Translations under genes and position numbers: made by a program
Shown here: positions 8,122-56,485 of the stretch, piece by piece
How positions within the stretch are numbered: the stretch's first letter is position 1
How the letters are laid out: each line of letters begins with the position of its first letter
Notes under the pieces: generated by a model
Databases searched by the model: none
What the model was told of the DNA's origin: nothing
What the model saw: the letters and a program-made list of their open reading frames with translations, nothing else
Sequence record: NC_049383.1
DNA length: 64,000 nucleotides
Direction: 5' to 3' (one strand)

Positions 8122-8904
8122 ATGAACATTACAGAATACTTAGAAAATATTACAGAAACAAAGACCTCATGTTCATGTGGTCTTGTTTTTCAAGTTGAAG
8201 AGGCTTTAGATGGTGATTTAATTGATAAGAAAGGATATGATTTAAACGGTCGTTTCAAGTACTGGAACACAAAACTTTTCAAATCAAAGTTAAAAATAGA
8301 AGGTGGTATTAAATTTGGTAGAACAACTAAAAATGCTACTGGAACAACAACATCTTTAGTTATTAGGGATAAGAGAAATAAGAAAGTTTTCACATCTGTT
8401 AGAGAAACAAAAGTTGTAATATCTAATAAGATGAATTATACACAAGAAACTTTGGATAAAGTTTTGATACATGAATTAATTCACGTATATTTTGACGAAG
8501 TTAAAATGTATGATGAAGGTCACGGTAATAACTTTAAGAAGTTAGCTAGTGAGATTTCTAAACACATTGGGTTCGAGATTCCGTTAAAAGATAATTTTTC
8601 AGAGATTGATACTGATGTTGTTAAACCAAAAGAAGTTGGTGTTATTGTTTATGAATTTCCGCATAAAACAAATGTTACATTCATGAGCGTAAATGCATAT
8701 GATAAACATATTGCTGAATGGGAATTGGCAACATTACCAAAATATAATCTTGGTGAAGTTAAAATAACTCACGGTATAGCAAAAACATTATTAGGAGATA
8801 AATACCCTAAAGTAAGAAACCTTAAAAAATTAGCTTTATATCCAATAAGCACAGATGATGCATTGAATATGCCTTGGGTTAAAGCAGAAGAATTATTTTT
8901 ATAA
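8122..8904 (+). CDS. SprT-like zinc metalloprotease with N-terminal capsid-targeting-like peptide
   Basis: VLIHELIH...GHGNNFK is the SprT signature; N-terminus MNITEYLENITE. Confidence 0.7.
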   Translation: MNITEYLENITETKTSCSCGLVFQVEEALDGDLIDKKGYDLNGRFKYWNTKLFKSKLKIEGGIKFGRTTKNATGTTTSLVIRDKRNKKVFTSVRETKVVISNKMNYTQETLDKVLIHELIHVYFDEVKMYDEGHGNNFKKLASEISKHIGFEIPLKDNFSEIDTDVVKPKEVGVIVYEFPHKTNVTFMSVNAYDKHIAEWELATLPKYNLGEVKITHGIAKTLLGDKYPKVRNLKKLALYPISTDDALNMPWVKAEELFL

Positions 8905-9521
8905 TGTTAGGTTTAGAAAGATATATCATAGAATCTTTACAAGATGTAAAAACTATGAAGACGTTTAAAAAATGGTTTGGTAAGTCAAAACTTAAAAACA
9001 AAGATGGTTCACCAAAGGTTATGTATCACGGAACAAGAGCTGAATTTAATGAATTTAGAGTTAATAATGAACTTGGCGCGCATTTTGGTGATGAGGAAGC
9101 CGCGAACGCAATACTATATGGTTCAAGTGGTAAGATAATGGAAGTTTACCTTAGATGCGAGAATCCAATTAGAGTTGATGATATGTTAGCTTTTGATTTC
9201 CCTACATTATGTGAATATTTTGAAGAAGATGAACCGAATAAATTACCAAAGGAAGAACTTGAAAAAATATTGGAGTTTAAAAAGGAATGGATAGCAATTG
9301 AGTTTAATTCACCACAAGAAATAAGAAAATCTGAAAGGATGGAAAAAGAGGGTGAAATGATGTTTGTTAATTTGTTTAAGAAAATGGGTCACGATTCTGT
9401 AGTTTACAGAAATCAAAGAGAAGGTAAAGCTGATTCATATATTATTTTTGACCCAAATCAAGTAAAATCAATTTATAATGAAGGAAAATTTAGTAGAAAA
9501 GATAACAACATCTATAAGTAA
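8904..9521 (+). CDS. ADP-ribosyltransferase-like protein (ART-PolyVal type)
   Basis: FKKWFGKSK..KDGSPKVMYHGT, GAHFG, VYLRCENP and YIIFDPNQVKS match the ART domain of polyvalent proteins. Confidence 0.65.
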   Translation: MLGLERYIIESLQDVKTMKTFKKWFGKSKLKNKDGSPKVMYHGTRAEFNEFRVNNELGAHFGDEEAANAILYGSSGKIMEVYLRCENPIRVDDMLAFDFPTLCEYFEEDEPNKLPKEELEKILEFKKEWIAIEFNSPQEIRKSERMEKEGEMMFVNLFKKMGHDSVVYRNQREGKADSYIIFDPNQVKSIYNEGKFSRKDNNIYK

Positions 9522-10008
9522 AAAAGAATGGTTAAAAAACTCAATGATTAAGAAACCAGTTTTTCACGGAACAGGTACTTACTTTGAGATTTTCAATACT
9601 GATACTAAAACTGAATTTGGTTCACATTTCGGAACATTGGAGTGTGCAAAGTATGTAGCATATAGGAGAAGTAAAAGTCCTATAATATTGAATGTTTTTC
9701 TTAATTTAGAGAATGTTTATGAATTACCCGACTTAGGAAAGTTTACTATCGAAAGAGTTCTTAACCAATTACATAAAGATGGTATTTTCACTAAAGATGA
9801 AATTATTGAATACAATCAACTAAATGATGATGTTAAATTAGGTCTTATTAAAAAAGACTTGGTTAAAAATCATAATATTGATGGTTTCAAGTATATAAAT
9901 AATAGAGAAGATAATGGAAACTTCTCTTACATAGCATTTTACCCAAATCAGATAAAATCTATTTTCGGTGAAATGACAAACCCAGTATTAACAAATTTTT
10001 ATAAGTAA
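9478..10008 (+). CDS. Second ADP-ribosyltransferase-like paralog
   Basis: PVFHGT, GSHFG, VFLNLEN and YIAFYPNQIKS are colinear with the upstream paralog. Confidence 0.65.
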   Translation: MKENLVEKITTSISKKEWLKNSMIKKPVFHGTGTYFEIFNTDTKTEFGSHFGTLECAKYVAYRRSKSPIILNVFLNLENVYELPDLGKFTIERVLNQLHKDGIFTKDEIIEYNQLNDDVKLGLIKKDLVKNHNIDGFKYINNREDNGNFSYIAFYPNQIKSIFGEMTNPVLTNFYK

Positions 10009-10011
10009 AGT

Positions 10012-10092
10012 ATGAAAAAAGATTTAAGTTGGGATTTGAATTGGAATGTAATCGATTCAAATCAAATAAAAGGTATTGATGAATTAGTATAA
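10012..10092 (+). pseudogene. 26-aa micro-ORF resembling the ART C-terminal motif
   Basis: MKKDLSWDLNWNVIDSNQIKGIDELV, compared with IFDPNQVKSI and AFYPNQIKSI in the two ARTs. Confidence 0.3.
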
Positions 10093-10183
10093 AAGATACG
10101 GATTTTGTGGTTTCTTATTTGGAACTATATAAAAAATCTCACATTAAATTGTGGGATTTTTTTGTTTTTAAGTATTTTTGTAT

Positions 10184-10191
10184 TATATTTG
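10184..10191 (+). promoter_or_regulatory. Bacteroidota-type -7 element (TATATTTG)
   Basis: Follows the hairpin at 10131-10162; ATG at 10215. Confidence 0.7.
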
Positions 10192-10214
10192 CGCAAACTA
10201 AAAATATTTTTTAT

Positions 10215-11789: not shown

Positions 11790-11792
11790 GAT

Positions 11793-12332: not shown

Positions 12333-12334
12333 GT

Positions 12335-13594: not shown

Positions 13595-13595
13595 A

Positions 13596-14872: not shown

Positions 14873-14882
14873 TTTAATTAAA

Positions 14883-15290
14883 ATACTGATTATCAATATT
14901 CTACACTTTTTATTTTGTCCTTAAAAATAAATGTTAAAATTTTGTTAAAATTGTTAAAATCACATACATAAAATATTCAACATGACCAATTTTTTAACAT
15001 TTTAAATTATAATTTTAAGTAACTGATTTACAACGTTTTATAAGAATTTAACAAATTTCAGTATTTTGTTTAATTTTAAACAATTACACCCGAAAAATTT
15101 TTGACATATACAAAACTTACTGTAGCGACAATATTTTAACAATTTCTTTATCATATTCTCAATAAAACGCATTTTTCATTGAAAGAAAATCAGTAAAAAT
15201 ATACCTAGGTGCATTTTCTTTTATATATTATAAATACAAATAACATAAATAAAAGCGCGCGGAGATAGGTTTAAAAAATTCTTATAAAAA
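14883..15290. repeat. ~410-bp non-coding dispersed repeat, copy 1
   Basis: Manual alignment to 57795-58203 gives about 30 differences (~90% identity), same orientation. Confidence 0.95.
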
Positions 15291-15345
15291 CTATCTAAAA
15301 ATGATTTATTTTTATACATTTGTGATTTAATAAAACTTATAAATT

Positions 15346-15722: not shown

Positions 15723-17276
15723 ATGCTTATAGACATTGTTCAACGAAAAGGGCGTGTTGAAGTTTCTTTTGTCGATAAAACAGGACAAATAGAATTAACA
15801 TCCATACCCACTACATTTGAGAATTGGGTTAAGTGTGATGAAGACGACCCACAAAAATCTAAAAAGTATCGAAACTGGACTGGTGAACCAGTTAAGAAGG
15901 TACATGATAGGGAATTTAAAGACTTGAATTTGCGTGAATTTTTATTACATAAAGTTCCGAAGGATATTCAAGAAAAGATTTTCGCTTATAATAAACCGAA
16001 TTGGTATGCTGTCGATATAGAGGTTGATGTTAGGAATTGTAATGGATTCCCTGAGCCAACAAAGGCTGAACACCCTATTTCAACAATTCAGGTAACAAAT
16101 CAACAACTTTCCACAGTTCTTTTGATTTTTGATGATATGAATCGTATTGAGGGAACACAGGAATATAAAGACTTTATTTCAGAAAGGGTTCGTAAACACT
16201 TTCAATCATCAAAAAAGGCACAAGATTTAATAAATAAGTATGCGAAGGATGGTGTTTTAAAATATGAACATATTGTTGTTAAGAGTGAGCGAGAATTATT
16301 AAAAGTTTATTTTGCTTTACAGAAAAAATCAATGCATCACATCATGGGTTGGAACTGGCTTGATTTCGATAGTCCTTATATTCATAAACGTGCTGTAAAA
16401 AATAATGTAAATCACTCAATGGCATCACCTGTTGGTGAGTTGGTGAATCGTGAAATATCTCGTGATAAGTTTGCTAAACATAAAGATTCAGAAAAGACAA
16501 AGGAAGATTTAGAACAAGAACGTAAGGAGCGAACATTTTCTACACCACGTCACAGAGTAGAAGTCGATTTGATGCAGGTTATAAATAAGTTCGATTATTC
16601 TATTGATAAAACATCATTAGCTTTAGATGCTATTGGATATCAAGCTGTTGATGTTCCGAAAATAAAGTATGATGGTAGTTTCCGTGATTTATTTTTAGAT
16701 ACAGATAATTTCCTTACATATTCGGCAGTAGATACGATTTTATTAATGATGGTTCACTTGCGTTTGAATACAATTACCTCATTGGAAATGGTTACATATT
16801 ATTCGAAAATTCCATTAGAGCGCGGATTTAGTACATTAGCTTTAGGTGATGCTATGTTTTGGGATGAACAATTTTCAAACGGATTGGTGTTTTGTCACGA
16901 AGATAGGTACTCAGATGATGATGATGGTGATACTGATTTTGAGGGTGGATATGTAATTAATCCTAGATATGCAACAGGTGAATGGGTTGCACTTGTTGAT
17001 TTTAAGTCGCTTTATCCAACTTGTGGTCAGTCTTTAGGTTGTTCTTTTGATAATATCATAAAAGAGAATGCTACGGATGAAGAAATAAAAGAGGCTATTA
17101 AACTTGGTCATAGAGTTTCAATGAATAGAACTATTTATGACAAAGATGATGATGGTACATTGACTCGTGTTTGGAATAGACTAATTTATGAGCGTTATCA
17201 CTTTAAGGATATTCGTTTATTTATTGATAATAAGATGCAACCAGTTATTAAAAAAATGATAGAAGCTCATGGATAA
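15723..17276 (+). CDS. Family-B DNA polymerase, N-terminal subunit (3'-5' exonuclease plus motif A; gp43A-like)
   Basis: ExoI VDIEVD, ExoII WNWLDFDSPYI, ExoIII YSAVD, motif A VDFKSLYP; ends in the fingers helix. Confidence 0.9.
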   Translation: MLIDIVQRKGRVEVSFVDKTGQIELTSIPTTFENWVKCDEDDPQKSKKYRNWTGEPVKKVHDREFKDLNLREFLLHKVPKDIQEKIFAYNKPNWYAVDIEVDVRNCNGFPEPTKAEHPISTIQVTNQQLSTVLLIFDDMNRIEGTQEYKDFISERVRKHFQSSKKAQDLINKYAKDGVLKYEHIVVKSERELLKVYFALQKKSMHHIMGWNWLDFDSPYIHKRAVKNNVNHSMASPVGELVNREISRDKFAKHKDSEKTKEDLEQERKERTFSTPRHRVEVDLMQVINKFDYSIDKTSLALDAIGYQAVDVPKIKYDGSFRDLFLDTDNFLTYSAVDTILLMMVHLRLNTITSLEMVTYYSKIPLERGFSTLALGDAMFWDEQFSNGLVFCHEDRYSDDDDGDTDFEGGYVINPRYATGEWVALVDFKSLYPTCGQSLGCSFDNIIKENATDEEIKEAIKLGHRVSMNRTIYDKDDDGTLTRVWNRLIYERYHFKDIRLFIDNKMQPVIKKMIEAHG

Positions 17277-17590: not shown

Positions 17591-18490
17591 ATGAGTAGAA
17601 AACTTATAGTAAAGGGTATAGACCCTTCAAATTTTATGAGATTGATTATAAAATCAGCACTTGTTAGAGATAAGAAAGGTGATAAAATCGCGGCTGAGTC
17701 TTTACCTCTTATGATTACTGGTGATAAAATCAAGTCTTTAAAAGAGACAAAAACTGAAACAACTTGTAAGTATTGGTATGAAGATTTAAGTCTTTTCTGT
17801 GAGAATGCCGATGAGGTAAAAGAAATTTTAGGGGATAATACTTGTAGAATTTGGCTTTTCAGTTGTAAAAGTTTAGTTTCGGGATGCTTGAAACATTTTA
17901 AAGAAAAGGTTAATTTAGAAATCATTTTAGATGATGGTAACTTTGATGCTGTTGAATATGTATCTATATTCAATGAGAGTGCTAAGATAAAATTTTCTGT
18001 TGGTGTTGCTTCTGCTACTTTTGATGAGTATGATGAAGAAGATTTGAATGATATTTTTGATGTATCTAGGGCTAAATGTTCATTTTCTTTATCTGATGAT
18101 GAATTAAAGAAGATTAAACAAGCATCTAAGATGGAATATATTTTAGGTAAATCACATGATGCTGTTTCATTTGTTGCTCGTGACGGTTCTTTATATTTCA
18201 AAACATTTACTGTTGAAATTAAATTACATGATACAGATGTTGAGTTCGATGAGTTTTACATTAAAAAAGATGTTATTGAAACTATTGATGCTGAGTCTCA
18301 CAATGTTTTTATAACCAACTGGAATAACACGGATTGTATTATTGTTAATTCTGTTGATTCTGATACATTCCAGTATATCGGTATCTTAAATAAATTCAAT
18401 ACATCTATTGATTTGGAAAGTGTTGAAGAAGAGATTGAAGCTGTTGATTATGCTAGTTTCGATGGTATGGATGAAAACCCATTATTCTAA
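17591..18490 (+). CDS. Probable sliding clamp (gp45/PCNA-like)
   Basis: 299 aa with two repeats of a beta-alpha-beta pattern; FSLSDDELKKIKQAS resembles the gp45 second-domain helix; acidic; lies between the polymerase halves. Confidence 0.6.
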   Translation: MSRKLIVKGIDPSNFMRLIIKSALVRDKKGDKIAAESLPLMITGDKIKSLKETKTETTCKYWYEDLSLFCENADEVKEILGDNTCRIWLFSCKSLVSGCLKHFKEKVNLEIILDDGNFDAVEYVSIFNESAKIKFSVGVASATFDEYDEEDLNDIFDVSRAKCSFSLSDDELKKIKQASKMEYILGKSHDAVSFVARDGSLYFKTFTVEIKLHDTDVEFDEFYIKKDVIETIDAESHNVFITNWNNTDCIIVNSVDSDTFQYIGILNKFNTSIDLESVEEEIEAVDYASFDGMDENPLF

Positions 18491-19902
18491 TGAGTGATGT
18501 TTTAGATATAGCTTTCAAGGCATTAGCTATTGATGAACATTTAATTACAACAAAAGGAAATTCGCCTGACCTCGCACCTGATTTATTTGATGCGAGGGTG
18601 GCGATTGAAAAAACATTTGTTGATTTATGTGAGCGTTTAGATAATGTTGATGAAATAAAGGATGATAAAAAGGCTTTAGAGATTTTGTATGATGATTTAC
18701 AGAATGCATCTATCTTTTATGATGCTACACAGTTATCCGCAAAAACTCTTGCAAATTCAATGTATGGATATGTTGGTGCGCCATTTTCTAGATACTATAA
18801 AAAGTGTGTTGCCGCTGACATTACAGCCGAAGGACGTAACGCTACAAAGATGGCAGATGTAAGAACCACTCAATATTTTGAATCACCTAAAGGATGGGCT
18901 AGTGAGACTGAATATTTCGAAAAGATTAAAGTTGAATTTGCTGATATTATTAATGTTGATAAGTTGACACCTGTAAAGGCATCTAACGGATTGGGTATTT
19001 ATGGTGATACGGATTCTGTATTCTTTATCATGAAGCCTATTTTGGATAGCTTGGGTGTTAAACCTGATGCTGATAGTTATCGTTGTACTGAATTATGTGT
19101 TAGTATAATTATGAATCCTGTTGATAAGATACATAAGGAGTTATTTAGAAGATATGCTGAGAATAGGAATTGTAAGAATTTACAAGTATTTGAATTAGAG
19201 GCTATTTTAAGGCGAACTATTCACCTTGCAAAGAAAAAGTATATTGGTTCGTATTTTTGGAAGGATGGTAAATTTTTAATTCCTAAAGATTTTGATTCGA
19301 TACCGAATGCTTATAAGAGTATTAAGTTAAAATCTACAGGTTTAGAGCTTGCCCAAAAATCGACACCAGTAATTATCAAGGAATATCTTAAAAAGTATGT
19401 TTATTTGATGTTGTCTAGTAAACAGGTTTCTGATGAGTTTTACTTTAAGATGGCTTACGCAATGACTAAAAGTTTTTCTGATATGCATATTGATGATTAT
19501 TCTAAAGCTAGGGCGTTGGGTACATTTAACAAGTATCATGATATAAAACCTAATGGTCAATATATAAAAACTGGTGGTGATAAAGTTATGGGTGCTTGTG
19601 TTCGTTATAATAATGAAGTGATAAATCACGGTTTAGAATCAAAATATCCGATGATTGCGCAAGGTTCAAGGGTTAAGTTTTATGAAGATATTAATCAACA
19701 AACATTTGCATATCCAATTGATGATAATTGTTCTTTTCCCGAAGAATTTGCACCACCACCACACATAAGGTTGAATTTGGAAAAGATGTTATTTAAACCA
19801 TTAGAAAGGATTATGTGTAAGGTTACCAATGCAGATTTGAGTATGTTGGGTTCACAACATTATCAAGTAACTAAATCTATTTTCAAGAAGAAAAAGTTAT
19901 AA
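18490..19902 (+). CDS. Family-B DNA polymerase, C-terminal subunit (gp43B-like)
   Basis: Motif B KTLANSMYG, motif C YGDTDS, KKKY and KSTGLE. Confidence 0.9.
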   Translation: MSDVLDIAFKALAIDEHLITTKGNSPDLAPDLFDARVAIEKTFVDLCERLDNVDEIKDDKKALEILYDDLQNASIFYDATQLSAKTLANSMYGYVGAPFSRYYKKCVAADITAEGRNATKMADVRTTQYFESPKGWASETEYFEKIKVEFADIINVDKLTPVKASNGLGIYGDTDSVFFIMKPILDSLGVKPDADSYRCTELCVSIIMNPVDKIHKELFRRYAENRNCKNLQVFELEAILRRTIHLAKKKYIGSYFWKDGKFLIPKDFDSIPNAYKSIKLKSTGLELAQKSTPVIIKEYLKKYVYLMLSSKQVSDEFYFKMAYAMTKSFSDMHIDDYSKARALGTFNKYHDIKPNGQYIKTGGDKVMGACVRYNNEVINHGLESKYPMIAQGSRVKFYEDINQQTFAYPIDDNCSFPEEFAPPPHIRLNLEKMLFKPLERIMCKVTNADLSMLGSQHYQVTKSIFKKKKL

Positions 19903-19932: not shown

Positions 19933-19986
19933 ATATTGTTTGAAAGTCAAAGGTATTTTTTTATACTTTTGGCTTTCAAACAATAT
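19933..19986. other. 24-bp intergenic hairpin between two TATAAATA boxes
   Basis: atattgtttgaaagtcaaaggtat/atacttttggctttcaaacaatat (two G-U pairs); boxes at 19916-19923 and 19986-19993. Confidence 0.75.
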
Positions 19987-20056
19987 ATAAATAAACGACA
20001 AATTTATTTGTCATAAGTGTAAGAAGTTTCAAGATAAAATAAAATTCTAATCAAGT

Positions 20057-22867
20057 ATGAAAAATTTTCAAAGTTTTGTAGATAAGTTCGTTGGAGAATC
20101 ACAATTAGGTGAGAACTTATTACAATTAAAGCCTATGTCTTCAAAAGGGGCATTGTACAAAATTAATGCGCTTAAACACTTCAACGAATCTGTAATCGAC
20201 ATACATTACATTGTTAATGATTTAGTGGTAGAAGGTATGAAATTACAAAACACGGACAAAAGTGTTTTCCAATTCGCTGATAATTTAAGAAATATGATTG
20301 TTGAAAATGAGAATGCATTTAATATTGCATTTTTATTTGAATCAATTGAGAAGTCACCAAGAAAATCAGAGATTGATGAAAGAACTCAAAATATTATTGA
20401 GTCTATAATCTTAGAAGGTGAATTAAAAATCGGAGCATCTGTAATGACAGGTGAATTATCAAGAAGTAAATTCTATTATAATGATTTAAGAAACATCGAG
20501 CAAAGAATAATTGAGAGTAATGCATCTAAAATGAAAGATGTTGTTACTTCTGATTTCGAGATTTCGACACCAGTTTCTTACGTTTTTGAAACAGAGCAAG
20601 GAAAAATCGTTAGAGTTCAGAATGATGTATTTTTAGTAACAGAAAGTGAAATTATACCAACACAAGCACCATCACAAGAATTTGTTACAATTTCTGAGAA
20701 TGCTAAAAATTTAAAATATAACAAAGATGGTCAAACAGTTTTAGATACCGCTTTAGGAACATTAGTTTTAGAAGGTGAGTCTTTAAGTGTTATTGATAAA
20801 GAAGGTGTTATCAATGAGAGTTTAAATTCAAAAGAATCAATCTTAAATGAGTTTGCTTTCCAAGTAAACGAAATGGGATTGAATGAATCTGAGTTAACTA
20901 AATTGGATGCATTTGTTGTTATTTCTGAAAATAGCGAAAACTTTAAGAGTTTAGAAAACTTCAAAGTTTTAAAGAATTTCACAACTGGTGATATTGGTAT
21001 GATTGCAACTGTTGGTAAAAATGTATTTGGTTCTATTTTGGAATCACAAAGAGTTTTCAAAGGTTCTAAGAATTTCGAAAGTATTACAGAAGCTGTAAAC
21101 TTCATGAATGAGAAAATCGGAGTTGATGCAACGCCTATTTTTGAGGGGGAAATGAAGGATGAAAAAGAAAAAGAAGATACTAAAAATGCAAAGGTTGCTG
21201 AAATAGATGAAAGTATTGCTAAATTAGAAGCTACAAGAACTAAAGTAGAAGAAGCTATGAAAACCACTACAGAAGGTTCAGAAGCTCATACAAAGTATTT
21301 AGAAATGTCTTCACAAGTTAGTGAGGAAATGACTAAGTTAAAGAAGAAAAAGAATGAAGTTCTTAACTTCGAAGGTGAAGAGGAAGAAGATGAAGAAGAG
21401 CAAATGGAAGAGTCTAAATCAGTATCGAAAATGAAAGTAGATATGAAGTTGGTTAAACAAGCTTTAGACAACTTTAAAGGTTTACAAACTACTAAAGGTG
21501 ATTTATTTGATATTTCTTATTTCCCTGATTTCACGGATGATGTTGATAAAGGTTATATGACTGGTTTAATTGGTAAAGTTGACCCTAATAAAGTTGATTT
21601 GGGATATTCTAAGAAGGATAATTTCTTTAGAGTTGCTTTATTTGACTATAAATTCAAGTTAATAAAATCTATTGATGAGATTGATACTAAAGAATCTGAT
21701 GCTTTAAAGTTTATCGGTGAATCTGAGGAAGAGGAAGAGGAAGAGAAAACTACCTACATGAAGTGTAAGGAAGAGCGTGATAAAATGGTTGAAGAAGGTA
21801 TTAAGATGAATAACTTAGATTGGGGTAAATCAACTGAGGAAAGAAATAAAAATCTTGAAGCTTATGATAAGTTGAAAACTGATGAAGAAAGAGAAGCTTT
21901 CAAAAAGAAGTTAAAAGGTATCAACGAATCTAAAGGTGACCAAGAAGAGTACCAAAAATTCTTTAAGAAGATGTTAAAGAAATATGGTGTTGAAGAGCCT
22001 GACCAATTAAAAGATGAAGACAAAAAGAAATTCTATGAGGAAGTAGATAAAGGTTGGAAATCTGACAAAGAAGAGTGTGGTGTTGATGAGAGTAGAATGC
22101 AAGATAATCCATTTTATATAGAGTTAGAATCTTTAAAAGTTGGTACTATTGTTAAAGGTGGTGTTATAAAAAGCATGAAAGCTAAACTTAAAACATACAC
22201 AAAAGTTGGCGACAATAAATGGGAGCGCGAAGGTGATGGTAAAGTATTTGAAACATCTAATGTTTATGTTAGCATTGGTGGTACTAACGTAACCATCATA
22301 GGTAAAGATGATAAATCGGGAACTGCTAAAATAGATGATACGAAAATCACTTACATAAAAGAAGGTGAAGATGAAAAAGAAGGTGAAGAGGAAAAAAACC
22401 GTATCAAAAACGAACCTGTAAAAGAAGGTGAAGAATCACCTGCCGATAAAATCGATTCTGAGGAAGAGGAAGAGGAAAAAGATGAAGATGGTGGAAAGAA
22501 GGATAAAGGTGATGTTAAAGTAGAAGAGTCTAATAAAGGACAAAACGGTGTTATCAAATTTGCATTTGATGATGATGAAAATGTTTTTTATAGTGATGGT
22601 TATAAGACTAAAATTCAAGTTATGGATGGTTCTTTTGACTATAGAAAGAAAGCTTGGGTTGAACCTGATTTCGAATCGGATGATTGGGAATACTTAAAAA
22701 AGGACTATGCTAAACAATTAAACAAGCAAGTTAAAGGAAAAACTTTCGTTTATGATGATAGTATATTAGAGTCTGAATGTGATGAAAAAGAGGTTGAAGA
22801 GAGTTATAAAGCTATCTTAACCAAAGCTAAAAACATTAATGAGTCTATCGAAGCTCTTTTAAATTAA
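20057..22867 (+). CDS. Large prohead core/internal protein with many protease-site-like motifs
   Basis: About 30 [ILVFN]xE[SGNT]-type motifs, acidic stretches, CTS-like N-terminus MKNFQSFV, late promoter upstream. Confidence 0.55.
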   Translation: MKNFQSFVDKFVGESQLGENLLQLKPMSSKGALYKINALKHFNESVIDIHYIVNDLVVEGMKLQNTDKSVFQFADNLRNMIVENENAFNIAFLFESIEKSPRKSEIDERTQNIIESIILEGELKIGASVMTGELSRSKFYYNDLRNIEQRIIESNASKMKDVVTSDFEISTPVSYVFETEQGKIVRVQNDVFLVTESEIIPTQAPSQEFVTISENAKNLKYNKDGQTVLDTALGTLVLEGESLSVIDKEGVINESLNSKESILNEFAFQVNEMGLNESELTKLDAFVVISENSENFKSLENFKVLKNFTTGDIGMIATVGKNVFGSILESQRVFKGSKNFESITEAVNFMNEKIGVDATPIFEGEMKDEKEKEDTKNAKVAEIDESIAKLEATRTKVEEAMKTTTEGSEAHTKYLEMSSQVSEEMTKLKKKKNEVLNFEGEEEEDEEEQMEESKSVSKMKVDMKLVKQALDNFKGLQTTKGDLFDISYFPDFTDDVDKGYMTGLIGKVDPNKVDLGYSKKDNFFRVALFDYKFKLIKSIDEIDTKESDALKFIGESEEEEEEEKTTYMKCKEERDKMVEEGIKMNNLDWGKSTEERNKNLEAYDKLKTDEEREAFKKKLKGINESKGDQEEYQKFFKKMLKKYGVEEPDQLKDEDKKKFYEEVDKGWKSDKEECGVDESRMQDNPFYIELESLKVGTIVKGGVIKSMKAKLKTYTKVGDNKWEREGDGKVFETSNVYVSIGGTNVTIIGKDDKSGTAKIDDTKITYIKEGEDEKEGEEEKNRIKNEPVKEGEESPADKIDSEEEEEEKDEDGGKKDKGDVKVEESNKGQNGVIKFAFDDDENVFYSDGYKTKIQVMDGSFDYRKKAWVEPDFESDDWEYLKKDYAKQLNKQVKGKTFVYDDSILESECDEKEVEESYKAILTKAKNINESIEALLN

Positions 22868-22922: not shown

Positions 22923-24308
22923 ATGAAAGTAACAGTTTATAAAGGTGGTGAATTACATAAAGTTAATGAATCTATCGAAAATGTTGAATTATTACAACAA
23001 AAATTGGTAAAAGAAGGTTGGACTCAAAATGAAAATGAGTTTACTTTAGGTGAAAATAAAATGGTTTTTGAATCAGTTGATGAAAAAGCACCGAAGTATG
23101 ACATGAAAGAAGTTCAGTCAAAATTTGGTAAGAAATTAACTACTCTTTTAGGTGATGTTTCTTATCAAGTTGGTCAAAAGAAACCAAGTACTACGGAATT
23201 ATATAGTACTAAGATTATTAACTCTTTTAAGGAGAAAAGAAATTCTAAAAATAATCCAAGGATTAAAAAAGAATATACAAAGTTCATTGAGTATTTAATG
23301 GATTTACACGAAGAGTGGTTTGGAACTTATTTAGGTGTTAGAAAGAATGTTTCAGAGGGATTAGATGTTAATAGTTTAGAAGCGGGTACAACATTGATTT
23401 ACGAGAATGAAGGTATTACTACTTATTTCCATATTAAAGAATTAGGTAATTTAAGGGCTGTTGGGAACATTTTAAATGAAAATGGTATGACAGTACTTAA
23501 AAATGTTGAAGTTCCATATACGATACTTGAAAAGTATTCTGAGAAGTATAGTTTAACAGAAAGTTTAGACTCTAAGTATTCAGATACTCTTTTACCAAAA
23601 ATTAAAGTAGGTAATAAAATCTCATTAGGTGGTGGTGGTGACAATAAAATGAAGGTTACTAACATCAACACTATGAAAAAGCGTTTAGAGGGTGAGTTTA
23701 TTGATAGTAATGATAAGGTTCGTTCTAATATCACAATTCCATTTTCATATTTCGCTAATCCACATTATAACAAAAACTATAAAATTGTTGAGAGTGAAGA
23801 TTTTGTTGATGTTTATTTTGTAAAGGAAAATAACACATTAAAAGTTGGTGAAGAGGTTTTTGAATTTGATACAATGGGTTCTATTAATGTTAGAGGTGTT
23901 GAAATGCAATTAACTGAAAATGTTGAAGACCTTTTAGAGTGTATGAATGATGTTTTTGCTGAAAGTTTCCGTTTTGGAAATGTTGAGTCTATGGATGATA
24001 TGAAATTATATTCTCGTGGATTAAATCATGGATTAAGACGTGATAGAGAAAGTATTAGAATAATTGAAGATAATAAGAATGCAACATCTTTTTTAGCTGA
24101 GTGGTTGGTTTTAGATACAAGGGATGAGGTTTTACAATTCCCGAAGATTTTACCACACTTAAAGGTAATTGAAGGTATGTTAACAAAAGCAAATGATAAA
24201 ACAAGTTTAGGTAAGATGAAAGTTCTTTTAGAAGAGGTTTTCTTACAACCTATTGATGAACAGGACTTTATGAATGTTGTTGATAAATATTCAAACTTGA
24301 ATTTATAA
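22923..24308 (+). CDS. Hypothetical internal head protein (modular, xES sites)
   Basis: VNES, VFES, VSEG, LTES, IVES, LTEN and FAES punctuate the protein. Confidence 0.45.
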   Translation: MKVTVYKGGELHKVNESIENVELLQQKLVKEGWTQNENEFTLGENKMVFESVDEKAPKYDMKEVQSKFGKKLTTLLGDVSYQVGQKKPSTTELYSTKIINSFKEKRNSKNNPRIKKEYTKFIEYLMDLHEEWFGTYLGVRKNVSEGLDVNSLEAGTTLIYENEGITTYFHIKELGNLRAVGNILNENGMTVLKNVEVPYTILEKYSEKYSLTESLDSKYSDTLLPKIKVGNKISLGGGGDNKMKVTNINTMKKRLEGEFIDSNDKVRSNITIPFSYFANPHYNKNYKIVESEDFVDVYFVKENNTLKVGEEVFEFDTMGSINVRGVEMQLTENVEDLLECMNDVFAESFRFGNVESMDDMKLYSRGLNHGLRRDRESIRIIEDNKNATSFLAEWLVLDTRDEVLQFPKILPHLKVIEGMLTKANDKTSLGKMKVLLEEVFLQPIDEQDFMNVVDKYSNLNL

Positions 24309-24874: not shown

Positions 24875-25450
24875 ATGAAGACAATTTTAGAATATTTCGA
24901 CCCAATTTTGACAGATATGGTTTTTGAGTCAGCTAAACATAAATTAACATCATCTGATTTGATGAATGTTATATTACAAGATTATATAGAACACGTATTT
25001 TCTTTATATGGTTTATCACCTAGTGTTAGGGTAATGGTTACTCGTTTAAAGAATGGTTATAGAGGTTATGTTGATATGGCAAAGGTTACGGAATCTGATA
25101 AAACAAAGTTATTGATAAAGGTTAATAAGGATTTGGGAATAAATGCTTTGATGAAAATTATTGCACACGAGGCTACACACGCGAGACAGATACAAAATAA
25201 TCAACTTTGGTACACCGAAGAAGGTATAATGTGGAAGGGTGAGCAGTATATAAGTATGGGTGATTTTCAGAAGATTAACCGTACTATGGCAAAGAATAAA
25301 AAAGCGTTAGAAACGTATTTAAATTTTCCGTGGGAGATTGAGGCAACAGGTAATGAGAAAAATGTTGTTAATGATTATATGGAAAGTCAAAGATTTAAGG
25401 ATTTAAAAAATAACAACCCTGATAACTGGGTTTTAGATAATTTATATTAA
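24875..25450 (+). CDS. HEXXH zinc metallopeptidase with capsid-targeting-like N-terminus
   Basis: IAHEATHARQ...PWEIEA; N-terminus MKTILEYF...VFES. Confidence 0.7.
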   Translation: MKTILEYFDPILTDMVFESAKHKLTSSDLMNVILQDYIEHVFSLYGLSPSVRVMVTRLKNGYRGYVDMAKVTESDKTKLLIKVNKDLGINALMKIIAHEATHARQIQNNQLWYTEEGIMWKGEQYISMGDFQKINRTMAKNKKALETYLNFPWEIEATGNEKNVVNDYMESQRFKDLKNNNPDNWVLDNLY

Positions 25451-38609: not shown

Positions 38610-38930
38610 ATGAAACATATTGATATTAAAGAATACTTAACCAATGTATTCGAAAGTAAAGGTGATTGGGAAAAGGAAGTTGATTCGTGTGAAGATGGTT
38701 CATGTGATGCTAAAAATAAAGAGGAACGCAAAAAAGAACGTGCTAAAAATCTTGGATATGCTGAAAAAGAACTGGATAAGGAAAAGAAAGATGCTGAGAA
38801 AGAAGAAAAAGAAAAGGAAAAAGGTAATGAAGAAAATGATATTAATACTTTAGGTACTGATAATGATGGTGAAGGTGAAAAAGATAATTTTGAAATTGAT
38901 GGTGTTCAAGTTGATTTTGATGATGAATAA
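38610..38930 (+). CDS. Acidic prohead-core-like small protein
   Basis: MKHIDIKEYLTNVFES N-terminus; highly charged. Confidence 0.45.
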   Translation: MKHIDIKEYLTNVFESKGDWEKEVDSCEDGSCDAKNKEERKKERAKNLGYAEKELDKEKKDAEKEEKEKEKGNEENDINTLGTDNDGEGEKDNFEIDGVQVDFDDE

Positions 38931-42881: not shown

Positions 42882-43241
42882 ATGAACAAAAATAAATCAA
42901 TACTTGAATCTTTCAAAACTAGATTCAAAAACGAAATCGAAAAGTTAGATATTAAGATGTTAAACGAGTTGAAAGAACCTACTTACATCTATACTTTAAA
43001 GGATATGGAAAATAGAAGACAAAAATTATATTGTCAAGTAGATGTGATTGAGAATCTTTTAAATAATGAAGTACTCTTAGATAACCCAAATAAAACAATA
43101 GATGTATTAAATAATGATATACATCACCTAAAAATAGGTGTTAAACAACATATTCTAAACAAAAGTATGTCTGTCAATACATTTATAGATATGGTGTATC
43201 GAAAAGAGTTTATGATTCAAATGATTAAAATGTTATCATAA
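42882..43241 (+). CDS. Hypothetical protein
   Basis: 119 aa; TACATTTG at 42852-42859. Confidence 0.7.
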   Translation: MNKNKSILESFKTRFKNEIEKLDIKMLNELKEPTYIYTLKDMENRRQKLYCQVDVIENLLNNEVLLDNPNKTIDVLNNDIHHLKIGVKQHILNKSMSVNTFIDMVYRKEFMIQMIKMLS

Positions 43242-48862: not shown

Positions 48863-48879
48863 AATTTTTGTGTTCAAAC

Positions 48880-48887
48880 TATAAATA
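48880..48887 (+). promoter_or_regulatory. T4-type late promoter TATAAATA
   Basis: Exact consensus 26 nt before the ATG at 48914. Confidence 0.55.
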
Positions 48888-48913: not shown

Positions 48914-49360
48914 ATGAATAGTTTAGAATCTTATTATTTGGCAGAATGTGCCGAAGAAAAAATATATAATAACGTATCATTAATGTTCGAATCAAAATTA
49001 GATGGTGATGAACTTGAAATGAAAGACGTTGATGGTGATGGTGAAATGGATGAGTTCTATTTACTAATGGGAAATATCATAGATGATGAGTTAGAAAAAC
49101 AATTTCCATCAGATGAAGAGGATGAAGAAGAAACTAACGAGAGTGTTAAAGCTCGCGCACCAAAGCTTAAAGGGAAGGCATTAAAAGCTAGAAAAGCAAA
49201 AGCTAATATTATGAGGTCAATTATGGCTGAAAAAGAAGTACAAGAAGCTGTAAGCCGTCTTAAAGCTATTCTTATGCGTAAGGCTAAATCAATCTCATCA
49301 TCAAATGGTTTCAATAACAGACAAGTTCAAAAAGCGTTTAAAGGTAAAATAAAAATTTAA
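48914..49360 (+). CDS. Prohead-core-like protein: acidic N-half, basic C-half (gp68-like)
   Basis: MFES and TNES motifs; the last 72 aa contain 21 K/R and 3 E. Confidence 0.5.
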   Translation: MNSLESYYLAECAEEKIYNNVSLMFESKLDGDELEMKDVDGDGEMDEFYLLMGNIIDDELEKQFPSDEEDEEETNESVKARAPKLKGKALKARKAKANIMRSIMAEKEVQEAVSRLKAILMRKAKSISSSNGFNNRQVQKAFKGKIKI

Positions 49361-49361
49361 T

Positions 49362-49994
49362 ATGAAAGATATTTCAGTTTATATAAATGAAAAGTTAGGA
49401 AACTCAATAAATGAAGGTAAAAAAGATACTAAAATTGAGTATATCGTTAAAATGATTAAACATGAGTTTGGCTCAAAACACAATCTTAATGTTTTAGATT
49501 TTAATGATAAAGAAATTACTTTCGATATTTCAAACTTCAATGATGATAATAAAGTTCTTAAATGGGCAACTGGTATTCTTAATAGAATGTATGGCGATAA
49601 AAGGCGACCTAAAATGATGGATGCTATCACAAAAGATGGTAAATTAATCATCAATGTAAAAGATGCTAGTGTTAATGAAAGTGAGGAAATTGATGATGAA
49701 GGTAAGATTGTCGAGGCTGAACAGATAGACCCAAAAACACTTTATAAAAAAGCTAATAATGACCTTATGGTTATTCTTAGAGAATTAGGTTTAGGTGCAA
49801 CACCTAGAATTGATGAACTTTGGAGTGGTGTACAAGGATTACAAGTTGAGTGCAAAATCTCTTCTCATGTTGAATATCCAATGATTACTATGGAAAATAT
49901 GAAGGTTATATCTAAGTTGAAAACTGTTAGGTATATTAGTTTTAGAGACTTTCAACACGGATATTTCCAAGTTTACTTCAAGCACGAAAATTAA
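49362..49994 (+). CDS. Putative internal head protein
   Basis: MKDISVYINE..INEG; internal VNES and IVEA. Confidence 0.5.
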   Translation: MKDISVYINEKLGNSINEGKKDTKIEYIVKMIKHEFGSKHNLNVLDFNDKEITFDISNFNDDNKVLKWATGILNRMYGDKRRPKMMDAITKDGKLIINVKDASVNESEEIDDEGKIVEAEQIDPKTLYKKANNDLMVILRELGLGATPRIDELWSGVQGLQVECKISSHVEYPMITMENMKVISKLKTVRYISFRDFQHGYFQVYFKHEN

Positions 49995-50786: not shown

Positions 50787-50787
50787 A

Positions 50788-51582
50788 ATGAAAATATTTA
50801 ATAAAGATTTAGAAACATATATTAGCGAAAACCTAAAATCTACAATGACTATTGAAGAAATAGTTAATCAAAATCATGGAGAAGTTAGTATATATGTTGA
50901 CCGTGGAATGAAAGGTTTTAAAAATGATATTGATAAAGCAATATCATTAGTTCCAAAATCTGCTGTTCCTAACATCATTGCACCATTAAACGCTAAAACA
51001 TATAATGATATGATTGGTTATAAACTTGACCCTCGTATGAAAATGGCTTTCGGTGTTACTTTCCAATCAGATGATGTTATTATACCAATGCAGTATGCAA
51101 CAGATTTCATTAAGGATGAAGCTAGAAAAATGTCATTATATAAGAATGATTTAGATGGTTGGAATAGAGTTTTAGAAATCAAAAAAGATATTAGAGTCTA
51201 TTCGAAATCATTTAAGAAAAATGTTTTCCAAGTATGTCTTTTTAACCCAAAGTATAAAAATTCTAAGGGTATGACTGTAGCAAAAAAGGATTTAAACGAT
51301 AAATATATTAGTAAGCATGGTGTTCGTAGAACTGTTACTGAAACTGCTTTAGGTGTTATTGTTCATGAGTTTGGTCACGTTTATGATAGTAGAAATAAAG
51401 TTTCTAAAAGTTCGGGATGGTCTGAAATACACATGAAATGGAAACATTTAAAAGATTGTCCGTTATACATTAAAGAAAGTGCATCGGAAGCATTCTCAGA
51501 AGCTTTTGCAAACTACTTTATTGATAAAGGAAAAGATTTACCCGATTTCGTTTTAGAATATTGTAAAAAGAATTTTAAATAG
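50788..51582 (+). CDS. HEXXH zincin metallopeptidase (lethal-factor/polyvalent type)
   Basis: VIVHEFGHVYD ... SEAFSEAF; N-terminus LETYISEN. Confidence 0.7.
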   Translation: MKIFNKDLETYISENLKSTMTIEEIVNQNHGEVSIYVDRGMKGFKNDIDKAISLVPKSAVPNIIAPLNAKTYNDMIGYKLDPRMKMAFGVTFQSDDVIIPMQYATDFIKDEARKMSLYKNDLDGWNRVLEIKKDIRVYSKSFKKNVFQVCLFNPKYKNSKGMTVAKKDLNDKYISKHGVRRTVTETALGVIVHEFGHVYDSRNKVSKSSGWSEIHMKWKHLKDCPLYIKESASEAFSEAFANYFIDKGKDLPDFVLEYCKKNFK

Positions 51583-52246: not shown

Positions 52247-52254
52247 AATAAATT

Positions 52255-52557: not shown

Positions 52558-52568
52558 AACAAATAAAT

Positions 52569-53126: not shown

Positions 53127-53236
53127 ATAGGTTGATAAGAATGTTAAATTTTGAAAGTTTTTTAGATTTGCTATTGTAAAACTAAAAAACTTTCATATAT
53201 TTGTAGTGTATTTATTAAACATCAAAACAAAACATT

Positions 53237-53515: not shown

Positions 53516-53597
53516 TAAAAAATAAAGTTAGATTTCCTTTGTTGGAAGTCTAACTTTTCTTATATTTACAAAGAATTTAATATTAATTAAAAACAAA

Positions 53598-53912: not shown

Positions 53913-54895
53913 TGAGAACAAAAGAAGAAATAAAGTTAGCTGAATTAACACTTCAAAAGTGTTTAGAAAATGTTCAACGATTTAGTATGTTTGGTGATGA
54001 TAATCATGAACAAATTAATGCAGGTCTTAGGATTTTGCGCGACCCTTCACCAATGTATAAACTTGATGAAGAGCTTACATATTATGAAGATGAAATTGAT
54101 GATATGGCAACAGCAACTTTCATACTTTCGTTAGGTGAATGGTTTGATGGAAATGAGGAACTTGTTGATATTATTTGGGGTGAAGAAAATTTAGTAACTT
54201 CATTAGAAGATGAACCAAAAAATAAAGTTCCAGTTGTTTGTGTTAAGTTGTGTAAAGATTGTCCGTTCTCAAAAACATCTTTAAAAGGATTTTTAGCTGA
54301 TTATGAAGTAGATGATTTCACTAGAATGATGAGTGCAAATTTTTCATTCCCATGTCATAAAAACGTTAAAGATGATATGACTTTAGAAGCTGTTCAACAA
54401 AAGATTAACAATTCCGAAATGTTTCATTGTAGAGGTTATATTGAATCATTCATAAAATCGGGTAGAACTGGGTATGGTAATCCAAAGTTACAGGAAGCAA
54501 TAGATGAGGTTAAGAAGCAAGGTCTTAGTGATAATTCAATGTCTGATTATGAGTTCAAATATCACCACGATTATATTTATATGGTTGATACTTGTATCAA
54601 GAAAGAAACAGATTTTACACTATTCTCAGAATCTGTTTATAAATCATATTCACCAAAATCTTTTTCAATTGATGAAGTTGCTGAGAGATTACAAAAGATT
54701 TGTTTAAAAGGTCATGGACTAGAGATTATGGGTGAAGTTCGTCATTATATTAGTGGGAGTTTTTACAATAGATGTATTGGTGAACAGGATTATAAAAGTA
54801 TTATTAGGAAATTTCATAAAGGATGTGTAAATCTTAACATTGATGAAATTTATGAATTAAGTATTAATACTTTAAAATTAGCAAAATATGAATAA
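53912..54895 (+). CDS. Modular protein with Cys/His metal-binding domain (DUF6283-like)
   Basis: CKDCPF...FPCHK...HCRG. Confidence 0.45.
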   Translation: MRTKEEIKLAELTLQKCLENVQRFSMFGDDNHEQINAGLRILRDPSPMYKLDEELTYYEDEIDDMATATFILSLGEWFDGNEELVDIIWGEENLVTSLEDEPKNKVPVVCVKLCKDCPFSKTSLKGFLADYEVDDFTRMMSANFSFPCHKNVKDDMTLEAVQQKINNSEMFHCRGYIESFIKSGRTGYGNPKLQEAIDEVKKQGLSDNSMSDYEFKYHHDYIYMVDTCIKKETDFTLFSESVYKSYSPKSFSIDEVAERLQKICLKGHGLEIMGEVRHYISGSFYNRCIGEQDYKSIIRKFHKGCVNLNIDEIYELSINTLKLAKYE

Positions 54896-54913
54896 CAATT
54901 AAGTAAATAAAAT

Positions 54914-55258
54914 ATGGAAAAAACATTATTTCAGAGAGTAAGACAGAATTTAATAAATAGTGGTCTTTTAAAAGAGGAATCAACACATTTAGAAATAGAA
55001 GCATTGGTTGTATCTATTCTAGATACAACATCTAACCCAAGCGGATTATCAGAAGCTGTTCAATTAGAACGTATGGTTAATGATAGAAAAATGCCTCATG
55101 ATAAAAAGTTTGAACATAATAATTATACATTGGATGATATGTTTAATATGGTTAATTATGGTCATGATTATGTTCTTAAATGTCAAACAAAAGGGTTTGT
55201 TCCGAAAGGAAATATTCTGCAACATATTGAATATTTAGAGTCTAAGAAAGACGATTAA
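54914..55258 (+). CDS. Hypothetical protein
   Basis: 114-aa ORF. Confidence 0.7.
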   Translation: MEKTLFQRVRQNLINSGLLKEESTHLEIEALVVSILDTTSNPSGLSEAVQLERMVNDRKMPHDKKFEHNNYTLDDMFNMVNYGHDYVLKCQTKGFVPKGNILQHIEYLESKKDD

Positions 55259-55285
55259 TTATATCTTTTTACATATAATTTTAAT

Positions 55286-55331
55286 AAAAATCCTGAAACT
55301 ATACTTTTTTGCATATAGTTTCAGGATTTTT
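55286..55331 (+). terminator. Intrinsic terminator, 18-bp stem
   Basis: aaaaatcctgaaactata/tatagtttcaggattttt. Confidence 0.8.
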
Positions 55332-55415
55332 GAGTTAGAACAATATATATAATAAACAATTTTTATTCATTAGAGACTGGATTTAAACAAGTCTTTATTT
55401 TTAATTTACACTTAT

Positions 55416-55862
55416 ATGAGAATAGAACAATATTTAACAGAATGTTTGGTTACAGAATCAATGGCATCAAATAACGCATCAGTAAAAATAGAGAAACTTT
55501 TAAAAACACTTAATTTAAACCATGATAAAGGTGGTTTTGAACCATTCGGAAAAGATGGAAAGGCTATGTTTTTAACTGTTATGAAGGAAGTAATTAATGG
55601 AGTTTTTGATGATATAAATTATTCAGATTTGAAAGATTTGAATAAAGGACTATTCGGAAAAGATTCTACAAAAATAGAAGATGCTAAGAATAAAAATTTC
55701 ATGAAAAAAGCAGTTCTGATTGACTCTGAAATCCAAAAAGTTGTACATTCTATATCAAAAATTGTTAAGTGGGATGCTGTAGTTTTTGTAGAGGCTATGA
55801 ATCAATACTTACAAAGCCAAGGATTTAATTTAAAATTAATACACGAAAAACAAGATAAATAA
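55416..55862 (+). CDS. Putative internal head protein
   Basis: MRIEQYLTECLVTES N-terminus. Confidence 0.5.
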   Translation: MRIEQYLTECLVTESMASNNASVKIEKLLKTLNLNHDKGGFEPFGKDGKAMFLTVMKEVINGVFDDINYSDLKDLNKGLFGKDSTKIEDAKNKNFMKKAVLIDSEIQKVVHSISKIVKWDAVVFVEAMNQYLQSQGFNLKLIHEKQDK

Positions 55863-56485
55863 TGAAAAGTATTTTAGAATATGTTACCGAGTCTAGAAAT
55901 AAAACGGTAAAAGCAGATTTAGGACACTCTAATATGGGTGGTTGGGATTCTATTTATAACAAATCGAAAATGGAAAATGGTGATTATCAATATGTTGCAT
56001 TGATTTCACCTACTACTGGTGAGATTAATTGGCGTGGTGTTTTCAAAGATACCGAGGGTAAGAATTTGGATAAAGCGTCATATGATTATATCATGAAGGT
56101 TTCAAACAAATATGCTAAGAAAAACAAGAACTTAAAGAAAGTTGAGAAGAGGGTTAAGGATATTTTCAAGGCTAAGAAGCCTGTAAAAGTTCAATATCCC
56201 GAAGGGAAGGTTAAGGATGCTGTTATCGATAATGGTCGATTAGTTTTTATTGAAAATGGTATTGGTTTGTTTTCTCATTCAATTAATGATGTTATTGAAC
56301 TTGTTGCTAAAAAATCTTACGATATAGTTGAGTCTGTTAATGAATCAAAAGAAACAGATTTTGTTGTGGGTCAACCATTTATGTATGGCAATTTCGCAAC
56401 AACTGTTGTTAGTGTTACAGAAACAACAGTTGAATTAGATGCAGATGGTGAGATTTTCGAAGCTAAAATCGAAGATTTATTTTAA
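55862..56485 (+). CDS. Putative internal head protein
   Basis: MKSILEYVTES N-terminus; internal IVESVNES. Confidence 0.55.
   Translation: MKSILEYVTESRNKTVKADLGHSNMGGWDSIYNKSKMENGDYQYVALISPTTGEINWRGVFKDTEGKNLDKASYDYIMKVSNKYAKKNKNLKKVEKRVKDIFKAKKPVKVQYPEGKVKDAVIDNGRLVFIENGIGLFSHSINDVIELVAKKSYDIVESVNESKETDFVVGQPFMYGNFATTVVSVTETTVELDADGEIFEAKIEDLF

Follow-up and report, generated by a model that had tools for sequence, protein, structure and literature searches.

The 64,000-nucleotide stretch of DNA analysed here, called the window in the following, corresponds to genome bases 124,001-188,000 of Tenacibaculum phage pT24 (LC168164 / NC_049383), a jumbo phage with a genome of 234,670 bp and 29% G+C. 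The literature on pT24 consists of one genome announcement, which contains no proteomics and describes a distant similarity to the jumbo phage PAU. Our subject is a family of short N-terminal peptides, referred to as tags, that open a dispersed set of mutually unrelated pT24 proteins and resemble the capsid-targeting sequence of phage T4. An earlier note on this DNA had quoted ten such peptides, all of which are present in the sequence exactly as given and at annotated starts. Upstream of pT24 genes no Shine-Dalgarno sequence was found, as is expected for phages with hosts in the Bacteroidota, and the first ATG of each open reading frame (ORF) was therefore taken as its start. For all ten quoted proteins this start is the first possible start codon of the ORF and identical to the GenBank start.

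The tag is a short amphipathic stretch of the form hydrophobic-x-x-aromatic-hydrophobic that ends in hydrophobic-x-Glu and is mostly followed by Ser. The genes of the window that are central to the argument are listed here with their window coordinates, a slash marking each predicted cut.

8122..8904, plus strand: gp155, tagged SprT-like zincin; tag MNITEYLENITE/T at window 8122-8157
8904..9521, plus strand: gp156, tagged ADP-ribosyltransferase (ART); tag MLGLERYIIE/S at window 8904-8933, 10 residues, in the T4 register
9478..10008, plus strand: gp157, untagged paralogue of gp156; Pfam ART-PolyVal at 5.6e-11
20057..22867, plus strand: gp169, tagged acidic protein rich in candidate cleavage sites; tag MKNFQSFVDKFVGE/S
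22923..24308, plus strand: gp170, second site-rich protein, adjoining gp169; MKVTVYKGGELHKVNE/S
24875..25450, plus strand: gp172, tagged SprT / M78-type zincin; tag MKTILEYFDPILTDMVFE/S
38610..38930, plus strand: gp183, tagged small acidic protein; tag MKHIDIKEYLTNVFE/S
48914..49360, plus strand: gp195, tagged protein; predicted cuts ...YYLAE/C and ...SLMFE/S
49362..49994, plus strand: gp196, tagged protein; tag MKDISVYINE/KLGNSINE/G
50788..51582, plus strand: gp198, tagged M90 / ATLF-type zincin; tag MKIFNKDLETYISE/N
55416..55862, plus strand: gp206, tagged basic protein; tag MRIEQYLTE/CLVTE/S
55862..56485, plus strand: gp207, tagged protein; tag MKSILEYVTE/S, the closest match to T4 MKTYQEFIAE/A

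How unusual are these N-termini? That the motif opens many unrelated ORFs had been proposed before, and the counts bear this out. A two-part motif, defined as hydrophobic-x-x-[YFH]-hydrophobic followed by hydrophobic-x-E-[SAGNT] no later than residue 30, is found at the start of 23 of the 271 pT24 proteins against 3.0 expected (p 9e-14). The core pattern [ILVFM]xxY[ILVFYM]xE, starting within residues 1-12, occurs in 13 proteins, while the rate in protein interiors predicts 1.45 (odds ratio 9, p 4e-8). The sub-motifs give a weaker signal when counted alone: [ILVMF]xES is weakly enriched in the first 30 residues (odds ratio 1.8, p 0.003), and hydrophobic-x-x-[YF] shows weak or no enrichment at N-termini. 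In residue counts by position, Lys at positions 2-3 dominates, which is common to the N-termini of all genes.

Along with these pattern counts, a blind test was applied in which each 10-mer of every N-terminus served as a BLOSUM62 seed and its neighbours were counted. The same family came out on top with 12 neighbours, compared to maxima of 7-11 in 20 shuffles and 7 for interior segments. The support that the blind test lends to the tag family is real but modest. In the related and equally AT-rich phage PTm1, used as a negative control, the two-part motif is found 5 times against 2.5 expected; given this lack of enrichment, base composition is not the cause of the pT24 signal.

Past residue 30 no significant similarity among the bearers was detected, with the exceptions of gp195 and gp128, which are similar in their C-terminal 54 residues, and of gp156 and the untagged gp157. 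Paralogy as the origin of the shared N-termini was rejected, since the bearers are unrelated past the tag both in pT24 and in PAU. Some individual matches to the motif were also discarded. The clearest false positive lies in thymidylate synthase (window 43544), whose start is kept in the PTm1 enzyme, and matches at alternative upstream starts (window 4020 and 50019) are probably spurious as well. The protein gp190 (window 42882-43241) starts MNKNKSILE/SF, with a protease-type site at residue 9 and no preceding aromatic residue, and may be a further bearer that was missed by the motif. Applied genome-wide, a use for which the earlier note had recommended it, the motif works as a discovery tag and yields about ten further candidates outside the window.

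A direct comparison can be made with T4 itself. In the T4 record IPII and IPIII start MKTYQEFIAE/A and Alt starts MELITELFDE. IPI carries a tag of this kind too. Three pT24 proteins, namely gp207, gp156 and gp126 (MRDIRDYIKE/S), share the T4 register, with a hydrophobic residue at position 4, an aromatic one at 7, a hydrophobic one at 8 and Glu at 10. Tested strictly on pT24, the register gives 3 matches where 0.19 are expected.

The T4 tag is cut by the prohead protease gp21, and pT24 encodes a member of the same family. The product of gp140 (genome 112,436-114,019, minus strand, 527 residues) is a T4 gp21-family serine protease of the Peptidase_S77 type, matching PF03420 above its cut-off and phrog_207 at 1e-193. 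Protease identity to T4 is about 20-22%. The catalytic residues His85 and Ser140 of T4 do not vary when its protease is aligned with gp140, PAU gp151 and PTm1 gp300. In addition, gp139 is a gp23-type major capsid protein (PF07068). In Chryseobacterium phage MA9V-1 the prohead protease gene (L032:15633-19676) encodes 1347 residues, compared to 212 for T4 gp21 and 527 for gp140, which suggests a very large protease-scaffold fusion.

The preference of the pT24 protease was approached by a survey of candidate cleavage sites, in which hydrophobic-x-Glu-[SAGNT] was counted in every protein past residue 32, so that the N-termini were excluded. Against a background of 0.76 sites per 100 residues the highest densities are found in gp140 (4.8), gp169 (3.4), gp207 (2.9) and gp170 (2.6). 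Compared to composition-preserving shuffles, gp140 holds 26 sites vs 6.5 +/- 2.3, gp169 33 vs 10.0 +/- 2.9 and gp170 13 vs 4.5 +/- 2.0, that is, 3-4 times the shuffle expectation in all three. At hydrophobic-x-Glu positions, Ser follows the Glu 16 times in gp140 and 18 times in gp169, while the figure for the rest of the proteome is 7.6%. The motif that closes the tags is therefore the same as one derived without any N-termini, and is likely the site of the pT24 protease.

The capsid protein fits into this picture. Its propeptide in pT24 holds the sites ITE22/S, ITE43/S and ILE60/S, the last of which aligns with LME64/N of the PAU capsid protein. For the latter a precursor of 585 residues and a mature form of 520 residues have been reported by N-terminal sequencing (PMC5646251, Table 1). 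These lengths agree with a cut at LME64/N to within one residue. The layout in T4 is the same, with LTE65/A in gp23, LRE10/S in gp24 and many sites in gp22.

Related phages provide an independent view on the tag. In PAU, 17-20 proteins begin MKT[LI]S[KQ]LYE[AS]KLNE[AS]. Without the tag they show no detectable similarity to each other or to the tagged proteins of pT24, and almost all of them lack a Pfam family. The conserved residues of the PAU tag use several synonymous codons, which argues for selection on the peptide and not on the nucleotides. In the GenBank record (NC_019521) the tagged gp142, gp154, gp199 and gp270 are noted as 'internal capsid protein' and the tagged gp152 as scaffolding; a description of the PAU tag was not found in any open-access paper. 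One pT24 protein outside the window (genome 229101-229412) has a start, MKTFTELYNKAIE, that is closer to the PAU tag than to the pT24 tags; it is not among the candidates.

On the IMG/VR contig L031 five proteins start M[KR]SLS[TN]HITE/S, with the two variants MKSLTSTIAE/S and MKPLQELVFE/S, and the tagged genes adjoin a capsid protein with LITE/S. In MA9V-1 the tags MKNFFSFINE/A and MKTFTCFINE/A occur together with a capsid protein that has FINE/A, and in PAU the tags end KLNE/[AS] and the capsid protein has KLNE/S. In all three lineages the end of the tag thus resembles the first site in the capsid protein of the same phage, as is expected if one protease reads both. In PTm1 the homologues of gp126, gp195 and gp169/gp207 start MKELIKHIQE/S, MKPLYESITE and MGLLDHVNE/A; the second of these is homologous to the C-terminus of gp195, and the C-terminus of gp207 is likewise similar to a tagged PTm1 protein. 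No close relative of pT24 emerged when IMG/VR was scanned with a single protein, and a profile scan returned only PAU, PTm1 and one 32-kb contig. A metagenome scan gave three contigs of 3-4 kb that hold a capsid gene and the adjoining protease gene, complete or in part, with no further neighbours.

Which proteins carry the tag in pT24? Each of the tagged enzymes of the window has one recognisable domain in a protein of 191-264 residues. The ART gp156 matches Pfam ART-PolyVal at 3.2e-20 and an internal part of phrog_21376 (1664 positions). In BLASTP its alignment with gp157 begins at residue 12 of gp156, just past the predicted cut, and at residue 6 of gp157. With one ART carrying the tag and one lacking it, the pair is an internal control for tag modularity. 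This resembles T4, in which Alt is packaged and ModA and ModB are not. The GenBank name 'P domain-containing' on both gp156 and gp157 looks wrong, as both are ART-PolyVal ADP-ribosyltransferases.

The other three enzymes are zincins. An SprT-like Pfam domain is found in gp155 at 4.9e-10, with HExxH at residue 117. In gp172 the HExxH lies at residue 98 and phrog_16532 matches at 1.6e-47; the atlas gives it a feature score of 0.97 and a structural similarity to viral SprT-like clusters with template modelling (TM) scores of 0.63-0.71, and its neighbourhood contains baseplate genes. For gp198, with HExxH at residue 193, the Pfam match to ATLF (1.7e-5) is below the curated cut-off, the atlas feature score is 0.95, and among structural clusters a MuF-fused viral family fits best (TM 0.62). 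Word-indexed homologue searches with gp198 and gp172 found nothing beyond the query, and sequence searches of the PDB with gp198, gp207 and gp156 gave no match. Measured against the background density given above, candidate internal cleavage sites are few in the tagged enzymes (gp156 0, gp155 1, gp172 1, gp198 3), which would therefore survive the protease.

A second group is rich in such sites. The predicted mature part of gp169 has an isoelectric point of 4.7, and cuts at the candidate sites in its first 400 residues would give pieces of about 15-50 residues. A Pfam search with gp169 found no family backing the GenBank name 'DNA ligase 1' and no ligase domain. Judging from these features, gp169 is probably a prohead core or scaffold polyprotein rather than an effector. 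Its neighbour gp170, not listed by the earlier note, ranks fourth in the genome in site density and is a candidate core protein. In gp207 there are 5 internal candidate sites, and 6 in total vs 1.5 in shuffles. Among the remaining tagged proteins of the window, gp183 has a predicted mature part of 91 residues with 37% Asp+Glu, and the tag of gp196, a protein without any family or fold lead, resembles the PAU tag MKTISKLYEAKLNE/A. Family searches in Pfam and PHROG found none for gp183, gp195, gp196, gp206 and gp207, nor for the proteins at genome 6585, 43075, 71192 and 192736.

Elsewhere in the genome, the tag bearer gp113 matches a middle part of a phage family of 740 positions, and several tagged genes, gp126, gp128, gp130 and gp134, sit in the head module gp126-gp134. 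An exhaustive profile-free search gave six relatives of gp126; all five that were retrieved (23-31% identity) keep the start M[RQK][DE][IL]xx[YHF]I[KQN]E. In the AlphaFold model for the gp126 family the predicted local distance difference test score (pLDDT) is <50 for residues 1-21 and averages at most about 62 up to residue 60, after which a confident domain follows. This model (pLDDT 80.8) has no significant fold match in the PDB.

The boxes that had been reported before several tagged genes are indeed there. The T4 late-promoter octamer TATAAATA is located 11-70 nt upstream of 5 of the 20 tagged genes, compared to 11 of the 277 others (odds ratio 8, p 0.002). Within the window the following boxes precede tagged genes.

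8094..8102, plus strand: CTATAAATA box, T4 late-promoter-like, 20 nt upstream of gp155
19984..19996, plus strand: TATATAAATAAAC box, 61 nt upstream of gp169
48879..48887, plus strand: CTATAAATA box, 27 nt upstream of gp195
55346..55357, plus strand: TATATAATAAAC box, 59 nt upstream of gp206

Boxes close to that of gp169 also precede the tail sheath gene and the protease gene gp140, the form at gp140 being that of gp206. A slightly broader box, which was defined after the sequences had been inspected, precedes the genes of the protease, tail sheath and terminase, further large genes that may be structural, and also one ribonucleotide reductase gene. As an expression signal of the tagged genes, the late-promoter-like boxes are suggestive only.

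What does the tag do? We consider it probable that it is a prohead-targeting propeptide cut by gp140, with the enzymes and small folded proteins being kept and injected, and with gp169, gp170 and some head-module proteins forming a core that is degraded. Packaging, cleavage and injection of the tagged proteins are steps that we infer by analogy with T4. In such a scheme the tagged proteins would be made late, and the tag would bind the assembling scaffold core, consisting of the gp140 protease-scaffold fusion and probably of gp169 and gp170. The T4 literature describes internal proteins that associate with the core via the tag (PMC3012670, PMC5694885); that the tag itself does the binding is an assumption of the scheme, as are all its steps in pT24. 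The capsid shell of pT24 would then close round the core. Subsequently gp140 would cut after Glu, thereby freeing the tag of 10-26 residues, trimming the propeptide of the capsid protein and fragmenting the core proteins. Folded cargo with few internal sites would stay in the head and exit with the DNA at the next infection.

Two classes of bearers can accordingly be proposed. Proteins of the head core or its assembly would comprise gp169, gp170, gp126, gp128, gp130 and gp134, while gp156, gp155, gp172, gp198, gp113 and several proteins without a recognised family are likely injected first-strike proteins. The earlier note had described a T4-like capsid-targeting peptide cut by a gp21-type protease, and this idea has gained comparative support from the protease, the capsid protein, the site motif, the T4 register and the relatives. 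Its view of the bearers as injected effectors has to be narrowed: the ART and the zincins with their few sites agree with it, while gp169 with 33 sites is likelier a core or scaffold polyprotein, and gp207 is site-rich too.

The tag might also be a propeptide for assembly only, in which case all bearers would be parts of the prohead core that are degraded or expelled and never delivered to the host. Such a role would agree with the strong enrichment of internal candidate sites in gp140, gp169, gp170 and gp207, with the position of several tagged genes in the head module, and with the tag on the PAU scaffold gp152. However, the tagged enzymes hold zero to three internal sites, ART-PolyVal and zincin families occur in capsid-delivered polyvalent and MuF-fused proteins, and the tagged Alt and internal proteins of T4 are injected, so we regard a pure assembly function as unlikely. 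Even less probable, in our estimate, is a pro-sequence or sorting signal that is removed by the protease and serves another use, such as silencing of enzymes until late in infection or targeting to the tail, the baseplate or a membrane. Three zincins and one ADP-ribosyltransferase could possibly be harmful if active early, and gp172 is encoded among baseplate genes. Yet the tags, at 10-26 residues, lie outside the catalytic domains and lack the hydrophobic core of a secretion signal, and in PAU the scaffold bears the same tag, as do proteins that are annotated as internal to the capsid. Moreover, T4 alt adjoins gene 54, an annotated tail tube gene, and alt-family ARTs are encoded beside baseplate genes yet packaged in the head (PMC5512222).

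Chance, a bias in base composition or a nucleotide-level signal at the start codon, for example a translation-initiation context, can be largely excluded. The G+C content of 29%, the Lys at positions 2-3 of all N-termini and the weak enrichment of single sub-motifs would leave room for such an origin, but it sits badly with the 23 observed vs 3.0 expected matches and with the missing enrichment in AT-rich PTm1. The tags also close with a motif that is over-represented inside the protease and scaffold, and they co-vary with the capsid-protein sites across lineages. The nucleotide-level signal in particular was rejected on the several synonymous codons used for the conserved residues in PAU.

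Several observations weigh against a prohead-targeting and injection tag and have to be set beside the evidence for it. The regex tests were designed after the data and T4 had been seen; the pT24 tags are degenerate, and the blind test places them at 12 vs a shuffle maximum of 11. The related PTm1 has no genome-wide enrichment in either of the two tests applied to it. Its orthologue of gp155 aligns from residue 84 only and lacks the tagged N-terminus, and its orthologue of the protein at genome 192736 has no tag. The candidates at genome 6585, 43075 and 71192 are located in the left minus-strand arm, away from identified head and tail genes. With respect to PAU, the published mature length of the capsid protein puts the cut one residue off the predicted LME/N, gp70 is annotated as an internal capsid protein and has no tag, and a published basis for the GenBank notes was not found in accessible papers.

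A more general idea can be put forward tentatively, as a possibility that we rate below even: PAU-like jumbo phages of Bacteroidota would possess lineage-private tags that co-evolve with the preference of their protease and with the first capsid site, and that load fast-changing arsenals of non-homologous proteins into the head. These arsenals would consist of an ADP-ribosyltransferase, several zincin proteases and small proteins, with domain families that in other phages travel as giant polyvalent or MuF-fused proteins. If this is true, injected first-strike proteins could be listed from sequence only, and packaged proteases would appear as anti-defence weapons.

Two further features of the window are unconnected to the tags. 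An intergenic repeat of about 150-450 bp is dispersed in at least 7 copies with 89-95% identity and contains small spurious ORFs starting MHLGTF; a search of Rfam gave no convincing match. Its copies are found at the following positions.

Window 14879-15330 and 57769-58245; genome 19.1k, 60.3k, 79.5k, 119.0k and 211.5k: copies of the dispersed repeat

In addition, the family-B DNA polymerase is annotated as two genes, gp165 and gp168 (window 15723-17276 and 18490-19902), with two small ORFs between them. The same split layout is present in PAU (gp105 / gp110) and in MA9V-1 (ORF135 / ORF138).

How far do the tags extend what is already known? The principle is textbook knowledge in T4, and related propeptides have been described in phiKZ-like phages (PMC5694885). 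New are the occurrence of a tag in the PAU-like jumbo phages that infect Bacteroidota, the tracking of the capsid site by tags specific to each lineage, and domains of the polyvalent type that appear as separate tagged proteins. If the tags work as in T4, about 20 head-packed proteins of a jumbo phage of marine Flavobacteriaceae can be listed, nearly all of them annotated as hypothetical, and the list would include enzymes that are likely active in the first seconds of infection. With PAU, MA9V-1 and uncultured relatives each having a tag of their own, sequence alone could suffice to find injected anti-defence proteins in a group that mostly defies homology searches. The packaging-tag principle of T4 would then extend far past the T-even phages, and the tag could be used to load foreign proteins into Bacteroidota phages.

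The closest known system is that of T4, whose tag guides proteins without mutual relationship into the scaffold core and is cut off by gp21 (PMC3012670, PMC5694885). The internal proteins of T4 are diverse defence proteins that have only the tag in common (PMC3012670, PMC5694885), and the tagged Alt and internal proteins are injected (PMC3012670, PMC5694885, PMC5512222). pT24 shares with the T4 capsid-targeting sequence the short N-terminal peptide, its register, and the Glu with a small residue behind the cut. Protease and capsid protein belong to the same families in both phages, the cargo is mutually unrelated and includes an ADP-ribosyltransferase, and the core proteins are rich in internal sites. 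Unlike T4, pT24 has its host in the Bacteroidota and is a 235-kb member of the PAU-like group. Its tags are degenerate whereas those of T4 are near-identical, Ser mostly follows the predicted cut, and there are about 20 bearers compared to the three T4 proteins on which the tag was verified (IPII, IPIII and Alt). The ART of pT24 belongs to a different clade, ART-PolyVal, and its protease is fused to a scaffold-like C-terminal half.

Within the PAU-like group, PAU itself (a Sphingomonas/Sphingobacterium phage) likewise has a tag that is shared by unrelated proteins and ends hydrophobic-x-Glu before Ala or Ser. Unlike the tags of pT24, it hardly varies, and its first Glu comes one residue earlier. 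Along the same lines, phiKZ, 201phi2-1 and SPN3US carry long propeptides on head and ejection proteins, which are thought to target them to the prohead; a related prohead protease takes these propeptides off by cutting after Glu (PMC5694885). The propeptides of the phiKZ group, however, mostly exceed 100 residues and end in the motif Ala/Ser/Gly-x-Glu, whereas the pT24 tags span 10-26 residues and have a hydrophobic residue at this place, as in T4.

A third parallel concerns the cargo. Iyer et al. in 2017 described polyvalent and MuF-fused proteins that are predicted to be injected with the DNA and hold the domain families in question (PMC5512222). The cargo domains of pT24 are shared with them, namely ART-PolyVal in gp156 and gp157, the family of gp113 and the zincin fold of gp198. 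While polyvalent proteins combine 2-15 disparate effector domains in one polypeptide, the tagged enzymes of pT24 are single-domain proteins with a short, predicted-cleavable tag, and a MuF domain (PF04233) had no match in the whole pT24 genome at E <= 1. Finally, in phage P1 an N-terminal peptide of <30 residues suffices for capsid targeting of the anti-defence protein DarB (PMC9024508). The Dar proteins of P1 differ from the pT24 bearers in having no common consensus and no described T4-type cleavage.

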